Shown here: positions 32,415 to 36,158 of the stretch, piece after piece
Layout of the letters: each line of letters starts with the position of its first letter
How positions within the stretch are numbered: position 1 is the stretch's first letter
Sequence record: OP953026.1
Direction: 5' to 3' (one strand)
Length of the DNA stretch: 64,000 bases
Made by a program: the position numbers and the translations under genes
Notes under the pieces: generated by a model
What the model was told of the DNA's origin: nothing
The model's input: the letters and a program-made list of their open reading frames with translations, nothing else
The model's database searches: none

Positions 32415-32558
32415 ATGACTAATGAAGAAATTATCGTAGATGAAAGTAAATGGGCCGATGACAGCGAGATGGTTGGCTGTAAACCAGTTGATCTGTTTAT
32501 TGATTTTTACTGGGTAGAGCCCACTCATCATACTCAAGAAGGAAAAGAGGATAATTAA
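32415..32558 (+). CDS. Small acidic protein, 47 aa (not in ORF track)
   Basis: AAGGAG RBS; MTNEEIIVDESKWADDSEMVGCKPVDLFIDFYWVEPTHHTQEGKEDN. Confidence 0.6.
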   Translation: MTNEEIIVDESKWADDSEMVGCKPVDLFIDFYWVEPTHHTQEGKEDN

Positions 32559-32559
32559 C

Positions 32560-32835
32560 ATGGGTGAATATACACAGAATGGTATTCGTCATTTTCGTCC
32601 GGATGATACCGAAGATACCTTTTATATCTTGGGTGATTGTTATGTAGCCAATACTATCGCCGATATTATCGAGATGGCAACTAAGAAATGGGGTGATGGT
32701 ATTACTCTTGATATGATTAATATCAGTACTGAATATATTCATACAAGTTGTCTAGGGTATGATGAGTACGACCCCAGCGATTACAGTAATTATTTATGCA
32801 TCTCTCGTGTTAGGGAAACATCGCTGGTTAAATAA
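32560..32835 (+). CDS. Small hypothetical protein
   Basis: 91 aa; GAGGA RBS; acidic. Confidence 0.7.
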   Translation: MGEYTQNGIRHFRPDDTEDTFYILGDCYVANTIADIIEMATKKWGDGITLDMINISTEYIHTSCLGYDEYDPSDYSNYLCISRVRETSLVK

Positions 32836-32843
32836 ATTAACGA

Positions 32844-32870
32844 CATAAGCCCTCTCCTTCGGGAGAGGGC
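32844..32870 (+). terminator. Intrinsic terminator
   Basis: CATAA-GCCCTCTCC-TTCG-GGAGAGGGC. Confidence 0.8.
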
Positions 32871-32904
32871 ATTTATTCAGTTAAACTTTTAAGAATAAAA
32901 GAAT

Positions 32905-32936
32905 TAGCCCTACTGCTGTAACAGTAGGGCTATATG
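32905..32936 (+). terminator. Second hairpin followed by TATG
   Basis: TAGCCCTACTG-CTGTAA-CAGTAGGGCTA-TATG. Confidence 0.55.
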
Positions 32937-33001
32937 CCGTTGAGTAAAAAAATACTCAACATTTTCGCCCAAGTGGGCTTGGATTAACAAGAGGAACAAT
33001 C

Positions 33002-33307
33002 ATGTTAATTCCAGTTACCGCTAACAATGTTAGCCCTGACCTGCACAGAATGCAGGAAGTAGGTTTCTTTTTCAAGAGACCCGATGGATCAACCCATAGC
33101 ATGTCGGTTGCGAAAACGCAAGCCGATAATGTTATCCAATGTCGAGATCGTAGAGGTAACTTCATTGGTTATTGGGCTGGCCCTACAATAGGATACGTCA
33201 ACAACGCAGGTTTAGCCGTATCCATCAACCCCTTCGACAATTTCATAGTAACATACACTGACATGGATCAGAAGAAGTTCTATGTAACCGAAAGGAGAAG
33301 CCTATGA
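33002..33307 (+). CDS. Hypothetical protein, stand-alone unit
   Basis: 101 aa; GAGGA RBS; bracketed by hairpins. Confidence 0.7.
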   Translation: MLIPVTANNVSPDLHRMQEVGFFFKRPDGSTHSMSVAKTQADNVIQCRDRRGNFIGYWAGPTIGYVNNAGLAVSINPFDNFIVTYTDMDQKKFYVTERRSL

Positions 33308-33315
33308 TAAACAAC

Positions 33316-33335
33316 CCCTCTCCTAAAGGAGAGGG
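33316..33335 (+). terminator. Intrinsic terminator
   Basis: CCCTCTCC-TAAA-GGAGAGGG. Confidence 0.7.
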
Positions 33336-33339
33336 ACTT

Positions 33340-33915
33340 ATCTGAATTCTTTTTTTTGTTTAAGTGAGAGCCGCCCGCTAAAGCGGCTCCCAAGTGGAGT
33401 TAAGTCTCCCGCTAAAGAGAAACTCCAGAATACATGGGGTAGCGACTCCTCATGTAGATATCCTAATTAATCTCTTTAGCTAGTAATCAATACCAGTTAT
33501 CACTCGTTGATAATTGATTTGTTTATTAGCTAATTTGACTTAATCAGAATGATCAATACATATTGTTAATAATCTAGTATATTATTACCAGTATTACTCA
33601 ATGATACTGGTAATTAAATATTACTCATGAATATTACCTAATGTGGAACTGAGGAATCGGATCGCCCCGTAGGGGCTTTTATTTCATAATAAACTATACC
33701 GAAGGTATATCCTTATTCTAATAATAAATAATATTAGCATTATTCTAATAGCGTTAGCTAAAACATACTGTCTCCCTAAAAGGAGACACAGTATAGATTA
33801 TATTTTTTTAATTAAAAATAATAAGTCTAGAGATAGACTTTCTTTATGCCTTTAATACCTTCTAATTTGCTCTATAATCGATTTTATTCATTATTCACTA
33901 GCATATTAGCCATAC
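33340..33915. other. Non-coding multi-hairpin island (candidate origin or structured RNA)
   Basis: About ten inverted repeats with recurring CCGCTAAA, ACTC and GNA loops; no credible ORF; bounded by convergent terminators. Confidence 0.55.
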
Positions 33916-33917
33916 GA

Positions 33918-33940
33918 CATAAAAGCCCTCCTAAGAGGGC
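33918..33940 (-). terminator. Terminator of the leftward operon
   Basis: GCCCTC-CTAA-GAGGGC; reads ...GGGC-TTTTATG on the minus strand. Confidence 0.75.
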
Positions 33941-33949
33941 TAAAATGCT

Positions 33950-34186
33950 TTATTTTTCATTAGTTGGATATAGGAGTACAATAGACTCTGCGCATACTTT
34001 AATAACTTGGATATTTTCACTGTCATTATTTTTTGATTGTTTATTTTTAACGCAGTATTCAAATTGTTGGGATTTGAGTTTATATACGTTATTGTTCTCT
34101 TCTCCCAGTATTCCTCCAAATACCAATCCTAGGATAAATATTAATAAACCACCAATAAAGATAATATAAACATTACCATAGTACAT
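33950..34186 (-). CDS. Small membrane protein
   Basis: 78 aa; GGAG RBS; IIFIGGLLIFILGLVFGGIL transmembrane segment. Confidence 0.65.
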   Translation of the reverse strand: MYYGNVYIIFIGGLLIFILGLVFGGILGEENNNVYKLKSQQFEYCVKNKQSKNNDSENIQVIKVCAESIVLLYPTNEK

Positions 34187-34187
34187 A

Positions 34188-34556
34188 TTACATTAACTCC
34201 TTTACATCATCTGGAATAGATTCACACCGATCTAAATCCCAGTAGATGTGTGTATAGTGATCTTGGTTTACGATACTGATAAAATCCCCATTAGGATCGG
34301 GTAATGGTTTACGGATAATATCAACGTAAATAGTGTAATATAAATAAAGATCACTGATGAGTTCATCAATGTTTAAATTATTACCCTCTGCATATTTCCC
34401 ATATTTAAAATAATGGGCTTCTTCTGCTACAGCATAACGGATTTTATCGTAATTTTGTGATGCGGCATATACACGTGCAAATAGAGGGCGATTAAACTTT
34501 CTACATTCACTAATATTTTTTCTTAAAGTATTTACTAAATTATCAATTGCACTCAT
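34188..34556 (-). CDS. Hypothetical protein
   Basis: 122 aa; AGGT RBS. Confidence 0.65.
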   Translation of the reverse strand: MSAIDNLVNTLRKNISECRKFNRPLFARVYAASQNYDKIRYAVAEEAHYFKYGKYAEGNNLNIDELISDLYLYYTIYVDIIRKPLPDPNGDFISIVNQDHYTHIYWDLDRCESIPDDVKELM

Positions 34557-34581
34557 TTAGATTACCTATTAAAATTATAGT

Positions 34582-34607
34582 GCTCTCCCCGAAGGGAGAG
34601 CTTTATG
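34582..34607 (-). terminator. Terminator after the helicase gene
   Basis: Minus strand CATAAA-GCTCTCCC-TTCG-GGGAGAGC just after the helicase stop. Confidence 0.75.
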
Positions 34608-34610
34608 TTG

Positions 34611-36158
34611 TTAATATCCCCAGTCATCTCCACCAGTGGCTTGCATATTGCTAAGACTTGGTACAAAGTCCATGTAATTGTTTTCTTCTTTATCGATATC
34701 CCATCTAATACCACCAATACGGTCTGGATCAAACGGCATAACAAAATAGTGATGCTTACTATCACTTACAACGTTACGGTGTTTACCACGTTGTACGGTT
34801 AGATAATACTTACCACTTACTTTAACAATGTGGAAGAAGAATTCCAGATCAGGTTCTTGTCCAAGTCGGCGACAACCGTCATAGTAACCTTTGTTAGCAA
34901 CTTGTTTAACAAAGTCTTCTGGTGGGATATTATCCCTGATTAGTTCTAATGCCTGAGAACTTAACTGATGCGGACTAAAGAATGTGATACCACGTGGTGC
35001 AGTATAGTTACGCATTCGCCTAAATAGGAGACGAACGTCATCACCTGCTACACTGGTCACTAATCCAGTTTTAGGCAACATGTTTAGATAATCTACGCAG
35101 AGATATTGTAGTTCATAACCACGTGCTTGATATGTATCTAGGTAGTTAACTAAACCAGCAATCGTAAATTCAGTTGGGTCAAAACGATACATTACTGGTT
35201 CAAAACCATTTTCACGGAGACGAGCTGATACATATTCAGCTGCTTCAGCTTTACTAATAGAACTACGATCTACCTTGATACCTGTTTCATTTTCGTAAAT
35301 ATACTCATAAATGAAAATAAGGTTATCCGGAATCTCATTCTCAAGAGTAATAAACATTACTAATGGTTTCTTATTGATATCACGCATGTATGGTTTATTA
35401 AATAGACACACATGGCAAAATAGACTCATAGAAACGCCAGATTTATATTGATGTTGTAGGCCACCACCGATAATAAATTCACCACGTTTTAATGCACCCA
35501 GATCACCAAGCATCCTGTTAAAACCTTTCCATCCAGTACGGAAAGCACCATTTGGGGAAAGAATAGTTTTAGCTTCCTCAAAGAAGCCTTCAATAGAATC
35601 TAAATTACCAAAATCAAGTGCACCCATTTCAGCTGGGTGTTTCTCTTCAGCACGCGCGCGAATATATGGGTCAGCTCTGGTTGCCATTTCATTAATGATT
35701 GCCGGAATATCAGCAGAGCCTCTATTGAAAAGAATTTTTGATGAACATTCTTTTACAATAGCTTTTACCTTCTCATCAGCTAAGTAGCTATTTAGATCAC
35801 GACGATATGAAGTTACACGCATGGCTAATGCCATGCCATTTGGAAATTCTTCTTCTACTGCATTTTTAACAGCATCGTATAGATAACTTTCTTCACGACA
35901 ACATACTTGTAGTGATTGTAATACCTGTTGGGTAGCTGGGAAATATGCTTTCTGTTTCTTATTTAGATCCACTAGTAGATTACGAAGATCTAAAAATGTT
36001 TGTCGACCATGATCTACATCTAATGTACCACCCTTATCATTTAGAGTATCAAGAATCTCAGTAACCAATTCATTGGATGGTTCCACTGGAGAATCTTCTC
36101 GATTTTCTAAACATAATAGAGTGATACATGAAACGAGTAATTGTTTTGGACTTGACAT
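34611..36158 (-). CDS. dnaB: DnaB-like replicative helicase (gp118-like)
   Basis: 515 aa; RTGWKGFNRMLGDLGALKRGEF, variant Walker A GLQHQYKS, Walker B LCVDYLNML, HQLS motif, QRGKHR. Confidence 0.85.
   Translation of the reverse strand: MSSPKQLLVSCITLLCLENREDSPVEPSNELVTEILDTLNDKGGTLDVDHGRQTFLDLRNLLVDLNKKQKAYFPATQQVLQSLQVCCREESYLYDAVKNAVEEEFPNGMALAMRVTSYRRDLNSYLADEKVKAIVKECSSKILFNRGSADIPAIINEMATRADPYIRARAEEKHPAEMGALDFGNLDSIEGFFEEAKTILSPNGAFRTGWKGFNRMLGDLGALKRGEFIIGGGLQHQYKSGVSMSLFCHVCLFNKPYMRDINKKPLVMFITLENEIPDNLIFIYEYIYENETGIKVDRSSISKAEAAEYVSARLRENGFEPVMYRFDPTEFTIAGLVNYLDTYQARGYELQYLCVDYLNMLPKTGLVTSVAGDDVRLLFRRMRNYTAPRGITFFSPHQLSSQALELIRDNIPPEDFVKQVANKGYYDGCRRLGQEPDLEFFFHIVKVSGKYYLTVQRGKHRNVVSDSKHHYFVMPFDPDRIGGIRWDIDKEENNYMDFVPSLSNMQATGGDDWGY

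Follow-up and report, generated by a model that had tools for sequence, protein, structure and literature searches.

A hairpin-rich non-coding gap beside the helicase operon of a phiKZ-type jumbo phage is likely a cluster of transcription signals

This work concerns a non-coding gap next to a DnaB-like helicase operon in a stretch of 64,000 nucleotides (nt) from record OP953026.1. The whole stretch is called the window, and coordinates are those of the window unless phiKZ is named. Sequence identity marks the source as a Pseudomonas jumbo phage of the phiKZ type (PA7/PA02-like). Over 33200-34050 it matches the Pseudomonas phages PA02, PA7 and KEN49 at 100%. The match to phiKZ (NC_004629, 114564-115414) is 98% in the same orientation, and a window coordinate equals the phiKZ coordinate minus 81364. 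Among jumbo phages that form a nucleus, phiKZ is the model, and it is a candidate for therapy. Its non-coding RNAs (ncRNAs) have been little studied, and a 2026 review goes no further than noting them. On one side of the gap is a + strand open reading frame (ORF) at 33002-33307. On the other are PHIKZ117.3, PHIKZ117.4 and the helicase, all on the minus strand, in an operon of about 2.6 kb. An earlier reading of the letters and their ORFs (the sequence-only reading) had described the gap as lying between convergent terminators and as the longest non-coding gap in the window. Both descriptions are right, and the genes on the two sides converge. The RefSeq annotation of phiKZ makes the gap 685 nt, the longest in that genome, and the runner-up is 578 nt. 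No ORF of at least 20 amino acids (aa) was found on either strand in 33484-33845.

The gap is a hairpin island, and this feature is real and extreme. We counted non-overlapping perfect hairpins with a stem of at least 6 and a loop of 3-9. There are 12 of them in the 642 nt from 33308 to 33949. Across 634 segments of the same size in the 64 kb the mean is 2.26 +/- 1.72, and the island is the maximum. 300 dinucleotide shuffles gave 1.96 +/- 1.27 with a maximum of 6. The homologous segment also ranks top in the complete phiKZ genome (10 hairpins vs a mean of 2.17, standard deviation 1.51). Terminator-like sites are in excess too, with 12 observed in 32500-34700 vs 1.2 expected. The 9-mer CCGCTAAAG has just 2 exact copies in the 64 kb, both within the island. 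Every hairpin that the sequence-only reading listed was found, either in place or a few bases away. The second hairpin-densest 642-nt segment of phiKZ (113801-114442, about 32437-33078 in the window, 8 hairpins) adjoins the island directly on its left, so the structured zone is wider than that reading had drawn it.

We argue that the island is likely a compact cluster of non-coding transcription signals, several elements rather than one. Its parts are a published ncRNA, the promoter of that RNA, terminators, and one unreported conserved unit made of a promoter, a terminator and a hairpin (Table 1).

Table 1. Positions of the elements in and around the hairpin island
Position	Strand	Feature	Basis
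33362..33559	-	198-nt ncRNA, orthologue of phiKZ ncRNA candidate 5'UTR_p40 (TU089: start 114922, end 114725, minus)	published sequence maps here
33365..33427	-	two 3' stem-loops of the ncRNA sharing CUUUAGCGGG; H1 33365-33392, H2 33395-33427
33368-89 and 33395-427		two hairpins with common loop CCGCTAAA
33411-20/33471-80		10-bp complementarity
33457..33554	-	long imperfect 5' stem-loop, RNA nt 6-103; includes TTATCA-CTCGT-TGATAA and the TAGCTA palindromes
33560..33583	-	core of middle promoter P060; TACT box 33579-33576, 16 nt before start G33559	Putzeys Table S3, Wicke 2021
33584..33614	.	11-bp inverted repeat with 9-nt loop 33595-33603	centre of 20-nt inverted repeat 33575-33594/33604-33623
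33615..33643	+	predicted middle promoter: A/T-rich stretch, TACT 33622-33625, 17 nt, G33643	weight matrix
33643..33685	+	predicted ~42-nt RNA ending at GCCCC-GTA-GGGGC (33664-33676) + TTTTATTT	intrinsic terminator
33672..33728	+	conserved block: T run, AATAAAC, hairpin TATACC-GAA-GGTATA (33695-33709), TCCTTATTC
33313..33358	.	hairpin CCCTCTCC-TAAA-GGAGAGGG after + ORF 33002-33307; T run on +, GTTGTTTAT on -	two-way terminator look
33765-94 and 33823-40		hairpins of the right part
33765..33840	-	two terminator-like hairpins with U-rich tails (33794-33765, 33840-33823) around A/T palindrome 33801-33820
33924..33941	-	intrinsic terminator of PHIKZ117.3, last gene of the helicase operon

Judged by sequence, the left third is the orthologue of the published phiKZ ncRNA candidate 5'UTR_p40. 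This is an already known locus, and its expression in the present phage would follow from that in phiKZ. A blastn of the ncRNA against phiKZ gives 99.1% over 211 nt. It is present in 47 Phikzvirus records at 97-100% identity, as a single copy in each, and no homologue was found beyond Phikzvirus. In phiKZ the RNA starts at the middle promoter P060 (114922, minus), which was first mapped by Wicke 2021, and it ends at T053 (114725, minus). TU089 is the 197-nt unit without a gene and TU088 is a 715-nt read-through unit (Putzeys 2024, PMC10914365). The RNA sequence is given in Table S7 of that paper under the name 5'UTR_gp40. Grad-seq in phiKZ found an RNA of about 180 nt, and a Northern blot confirmed it together with a form of about 880 nt. 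The RNA co-sediments with RNA polymerase and 30S fractions (Gerovac 2021, PMC8545117). The published Northern probe JVO-18831 lies at about 33493-33521, where 28 of its 29 bases match the window. Since the probe carries the + strand text, the ncRNA is the minus strand.

The ncRNA takes in both repeated-loop hairpins, the TACATG...CATGTA pairing, a competing 10-bp pairing and the long 5' stem-loop. Folded as a 198-nt RNA it has an energy of -68.5 kcal/mol (z = -6.7). H1 is located at the mapped 3' end T053. The 8-nt loop of H1 and H2, read as minus-strand RNA, closes to a UAGC tetraloop via two U.G pairs. The energies of H1 and H2 are -19.3 and -13.0 kcal/mol as minus-strand RNA vs -13.8 and -11.5 for the + strand. 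Natural variation can be asked the same question, and 16 Phikzvirus genomes yield six haplotypes of the ncRNA. In all six the minus-strand fold has the same architecture, with energies from -65.1 to -68.5 kcal/mol; that of the plus strand weakens to -53.9 at the extreme. The commonest variant, 33529 G to A, replaces a C-G pair of the RNA by U.G; on the opposite strand it would make an A.C mismatch. At 33421 another variant loses a U-A pair in exchange for a G-C pair made with a base that was bulged before. The sequence-only reading had proposed that tolerance of G-U pairs would imply RNA and strict Watson-Crick pairing DNA. G.U pairs are tolerated on the minus strand only, which implies RNA. 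We argue from these variants that the left third acts as a minus-strand RNA and not as DNA hairpins.

A switch-like ncRNA had been proposed as well. The ncRNA part of that proposal stands for the left third, where the RNA is published. The switch part is not supported. The competing 10-bp helix is present and invariant, but its fold lies 5.7 kcal/mol above the best one and has a probability of about 2e-4 in the ensemble. The terminal hairpin H1 stays untouched in it. An Rfam scan at permissive thresholds gave sub-threshold noise only, with a best hit of 24 bits vs gathering thresholds of 43-70. ARAGORN found no transfer RNA or transfer-messenger RNA.

It is worth considering what lies downstream of this RNA. 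The phiKZ RefSeq record has two small minus-strand ORFs to its left, p39 of 69 aa and p40 of 31 aa (PHIKZ117.1 and PHIKZ117.2, window 32956-33307). Other submitters mostly chose the overlapping ORF on the + strand instead, which has 101 aa (PHROG 25431). We chose between them by stop-codon and synonymous counts. Codon-position counts are uninformative here, with the third positions of the + ORF and p39 coinciding. The + ORF has 9 synonymous and 10 non-synonymous codon variants. Since it is open in 16/16 genomes while p39 is broken in 5/16 by two independent premature stops, the + ORF is probably the real gene and p39 probably is not. In that case the read-through RNA runs antisense to a gene, and the "5'UTR" (5' untranslated region) in the published name is misleading. 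We picture the left third as follows. P060, used by the non-virion RNA polymerase through its TACT box, fires leftwards in phiKZ and would do so here from G33559, giving a structured RNA of 198 nt that ends past the two GC-rich CUUUAGCGGG stem-loops. Part of the transcription would continue for about 0.7-0.9 kb, antisense to the + ORF. The short RNA is probably less a leader than an ncRNA that stands on its own and has a leaky 3' end. The fact that it sediments with RNA polymerase and 30S fractions, along with the twin identical loops, would point to a protein-binding RNA.

To the right of the ncRNA is a 20-nt inverted repeat that carries the P060 box on its left arm and a mirror-image promoter-like box on its right arm. 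Published phiKZ middle promoters have an A-rich stretch and a TACT 16-18 nt upstream of a purine start (PMC10914365). A weight matrix was built from 8 of them, P060 excluded. When phiKZ is scanned with it, the + strand site ranks 17 out of 560,586 positions with a score of 13.1, vs 9.0 at the 99.99th percentile. Its TTACT box is invariant across three lineages. The sole change in the larger box is in ANB1 (L020), where ATTACT becomes TTTACT at position 33620, as in Pawinskivirus and in the published P023. The sequence-only reading took the ATATTAC repeats for something like early promoters, and the middle-promoter TACT box of phiKZ fits them better. Early promoters, which serve the virion RNA polymerase, have an A-rich stretch followed by T(T)gAGATcTATATTACtAannTG. 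Here the ATATTAC core is alone, in 2-3 copies, and the GAGATCT-like upstream part is missing. Transcription from the right-hand mirror promoter would give a + strand RNA of about 42 nt, with GCCCC-GTA-GGGGC as its terminator. This predicted RNA is unreported.

The loop of this palindrome has been flipped. Near P060 it is the sole difference from phiKZ, at -36 to -44. The loop is TACTCAATG here and its exact reverse complement, CATTGAGTA, in 12/16 Phikzvirus genomes, phiKZ included. The loop state combines in all four ways with the single-nucleotide polymorphisms at 33573 and 33615, which are 12-22 nt away. This implies that the loop flipped more than once or that recombination took place within about 20 nt. 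A second flip is seen in a hairpin homologous to the one at 32906-32933. It reads TAGCCCTCCTG-GTTGCA-CAGGAGGGCTA in PS119XW (L003:3521-3548), and the loop is TGCAAC in PA1C (L022:21-48), phiLBG22 and BRkr. The homologous hairpin in the window keeps its stem by a two-sided change from C-G to A-T. The hairpin is followed by CTATATG, which resembles a late promoter. vB_PA32_GUMS has AATTA for TAATT at 33809-33813 in a T7/A5 palindrome, which is either a micro-inversion or paired one-base slips in both homopolymers.

The second unit is best seen by comparison with another genus. The helicase protein of Pawinskivirus (PS119XW, PA1C and others) is 63% identical. Between the DNA sequences, identity is 65.6% for the helicase gene and 75.9% for the capsid gene, while the block at 33672-33728 reaches 89.5% and is the best-conserved segment in 12 kb. 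Similarity runs leftward from the block to the terminator and the invariant TTACT box. The terminator stem changed between lineages yet stayed paired (G-C to C-G, C-G to U.G), and U.G is possible on the + strand only. The closing pair of ATACC-GAA-GGTAT went through a two-sided change, from U-A in Phikzvirus to A-U in Pawinskivirus. A third copy, on a 1.2-kb metagenome contig, is more remote. It shares 82.5% with the phiKZ block over 62 nt and about 70% with Pawinskivirus over 200 nt. Divergent genes flank this copy, and it precedes a virion-protein ORF, as a leader carrying an early terminator would. The 194-aa ORF after it is unrelated to phiKZ gp119; it matches part of a leaderless Noxifer virion protein.

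By a covariance model there is one copy of the block per genome. The model finds none at the helicase loci of Psa21 and Viktualia and no credible match in cellular genomes. Searching IMG/VR with the helicase and with the block pattern returned PA7 alone. A scan of a genome collection with the block pattern gave 8 matches, which is about chance, and the best of these (25 bits by the covariance model) is inside a coding ORF. An outer helix GAGGA/UCCUU in the consensus fold was rejected too; it has no covariation and is broken in two lineages. Pawinskivirus keeps about 120 nt of the island, the ncRNA and the right third are found in Phikzvirus only, and the Psa21 junction has no island. By these comparisons the promoter-terminator unit with its ATACC-GAA-GGTAT hairpin is the only part of the island conserved in another genus, and it is unreported. 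The unit and the hairpin behind it would be under strong selection across genera. The block may be a new small-RNA or leader family of the Chimalliviridae.

The conservation peaks just past the T run, beyond the predicted short RNA. With its peak there, the block may work either as duplex DNA or within a read-through transcript. One can imagine an operator in which the 13-15-bp ATACC-GAA-GGTAT and the TCCTTATTC repeats regulate the divergent promoters or the convergent operons. The place of the peak suits an operator. So does a palindrome symmetry that survived the two-sided change (T..A in Phikzvirus, A..T in Pawinskivirus), a TCCTTATTC-like repeat found twice in all three lineages, and a helix-turn-helix protein gene, gp114, in the neighbouring operon. 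However, the two-sided change fits an RNA hairpin equally, and the adjacent terminator stem has its U.G pairs, valid in + strand RNA only. The block of the metagenome contig is placed like a leader, and there is no known binding protein. We hold an operator to be unlikely.

The other hairpins look mostly like terminators. A GC-rich hairpin with a U run, the form of an intrinsic terminator, is found at 33664-33685 (+), 33941-33924 (-), 33788-33769 (-) and 33338-33313 (-). The sequence-only reading set the C-GNA-G hairpins beside primase sites and hairpin promoters. They are more simply one intrinsic terminator, a hairpin with a T run, and one conserved small hairpin. On the minus strand the tail is AUUAUUUUU after 33840-33823 and GUUUUAG after 33794-33765. 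We suggest that these two hairpins are back-up terminators behind the helicase operon. With the PHIKZ117.3 terminator they would shield the RNA genes from transcription of that operon. The longest ONT read-through ends at phiKZ 115327 (PMC10914365). On the left, 33312-33360 has 80% identity over 54 nt with phiKZ 126773-126825, the convergent junction of gp125 and gp126. A "second place" seen in many phiKZ records is this look-alike terminator at 126.8 kb and not a second island. The right third is found in Phikzvirus only, and its border is unstable. PHIKZ117.3 (78 aa, 33950-34186) is open wherever it is present, and it is absent from SL2, OMKO1, T2P and ANB1. An antisense + ORF at 33846-34169, called by some pipelines, is broken in 6/16 genomes, phiKZ among them. 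Just past the PHIKZ117.3 terminator, at 33906-33916, the minus strand reads TCGTATG. The published late promoters P045 and P047 end in this sequence, but no start site is reported at 33906-33916.

So many terminators raise another scenario. The ncRNA aside, the island could be functionless in itself, a pile of terminators with decaying spacer where two operons converge. Most hairpins do have U-rich tails on one or both strands, and the loss of PHIKZ117.3 makes the right border a hot spot of insertion and deletion. The flanking genes tolerate transposon insertions in phiKZ (gene-level transposon sequencing tables), and Psa21 does without the island. Against this stands the 57-nt block, which is conserved far above the neighbouring essential genes and recurs in another gene context in the metagenome relative. 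The TTACT box is also invariant. We regard the pile of terminators as decidedly unlikely.

The sequence-only reading had an origin or priming site among its proposals. One version of this idea follows T4. T4 oriF and oriG consist of a middle promoter and a downstream unwinding element, and priming is from an R-loop. On this model a middle-promoter transcript stays hybridised in A/T-rich DNA and primes the leading strand beside the DnaB gene. The setting is tempting, since the DNA after the middle promoter is A/T-rich (25-31% GC in 33400-33999 vs about 37% overall), the DnaB-like helicase operon is adjacent, and this is the longest gap with the top hairpin density. The recurrent loop inversion shows that the inverted repeat is active as DNA during replication, and the literature searched names no origin for phiKZ-type phages. 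It must be noted that low GC is likewise found in many phage intergenic regions.

GC skew, repeats and synteny give the origin no support. In phiKZ the cumulative GC skew is lowest at 1 kb and highest at 265 kb, climbing steadily in between without turning at 115 kb. It tracks the direction of the genes, and a small dip at 115 kb matches the 2.6-kb minus-strand operon. There is no iteron array, no set of three or more repeated sites and no direct-repeat family in the island. The 11-mer TTATTCTAATA occurs twice, at 33713 and 33740, and its count in the window is at chance. Only 54 bp are found at the Psa21 junction, and Viktualia differs, with no convergent junction. The promoter and ncRNA part is also not conserved in Pawinskivirus or elsewhere outside the genus. 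In phiKZ the RNA accumulates as a free species of about 180 nt (PMC8545117). We consider an origin of the T4 type very improbable. The bolder idea, that the island is where replication starts in phiKZ-type nucleus-forming phages, with transcripts from the divergent promoters around the palindrome opening the A/T-rich DNA and priming synthesis beside the DnaB gene, and with the 57-nt block as the site that the phage initiation machinery recognises, is highly improbable.

A packaging or genome-anchoring signal had also been suggested. The signal would be a pac site or, like a centromere, would serve the PhuZ spindle or the phage nucleus. All that speaks for it is the unusual structure density and the non-coding nature of the gap. 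The terminase gene is about 100 kb away in phiKZ, and GenBank records start at many positions, which is consistent with permuted genomes. The island has no repeat array, and its conservation beyond the genus is limited to the stretch of about 120 nt. We hold such a signal to be extremely improbable.

The reading of the island as a cluster of transcription signals has points against it that must be weighed. Its transcript evidence comes from phiKZ and is carried over to the present phage by 99% identity. The 3' end of the ncRNA has no U tract; H1 is followed by ACUUAAAC, which is not an intrinsic terminator, so the end may arise by termination or by processing. The weight matrix is crude, and P060 itself scores poorly with it owing to one base of spacing. 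No + strand start is reported in phiKZ 114922-115943 from differential RNA sequencing or ONT-cappable-seq, and the latter, according to its authors, misses RNAs shorter than about 80 nt (PMC10914365). Lastly, the block may act as DNA rather than RNA.

The ncRNA locus is already published for phiKZ, and our additions are the strand evidence, the antisense reading, the second unit and the loop flipping. Natural variation argues that the ncRNA fold is selected as a minus-strand RNA. The "downstream gene" of this RNA is probably not a gene, which would make the read-through antisense to a conserved ORF. The second, unreported unit is the best-conserved DNA across genera in a 12-kb neighbourhood, and the hairpin loops of phiKZ-type phages invert repeatedly. 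The picture of phage biology is unchanged. What changes is that a tempting but unsupported origin call is removed and that there are now precise targets for deletion and small-RNA mapping.

Several known systems invite comparison. Like T4 oriF and oriG, the island has a middle-class promoter beside A/T-rich DNA in a neighbourhood of replication genes. Unlike them, its transcript accumulates in phiKZ as a free structured RNA, and the skew does not change at the island. The hairpin promoters of the N4 virion RNA polymerase and the G4/ssi primase sites are small stable hairpins with 3-nt loops, and the island has hairpins of that form. However, phiKZ early promoters are linear, A/T-rich with TATATTAC motifs, and lack hairpins. 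Of the two GNA-loop hairpins here, one is a terminator with its T run and the other is conserved but lies outside any promoter context. Flip-flop inversions of hairpin loops at short inverted repeats are well known in plastid DNA and bacterial quasi-palindromes. The palindrome here likewise has an exact loop reverse complement between perfect arms, recurring independently. It differs in that it lies between two divergent phage promoters, the right one predicted.

The closest likeness is to phage RNAs. Putzeys 2024 describes 17 short RNAs in phiKZ that derive from 5'UTRs by premature termination. In these a promoter is followed by a hairpin terminator within 40-200 nt, and there are two modes, a short RNA or read-through. 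The predicted + strand unit is laid out in this way, and so is its homologue in the metagenome, which precedes a structural gene. The predicted unit differs in that no + strand gene follows it here or in Pawinskivirus, and its RNA, at about 42 nt, is too short for that study to detect. The left third compares with 5'UTR_p40/TU089 itself. The present copy is from a PA7/PA02-like relative and has the hairpin loop upstream of its promoter flipped. In all else that was compared it is alike: the locus, the strand, 99% of the sequence, the promoter P060, the 3' hairpins at T053 and a length of 197-198 nt.

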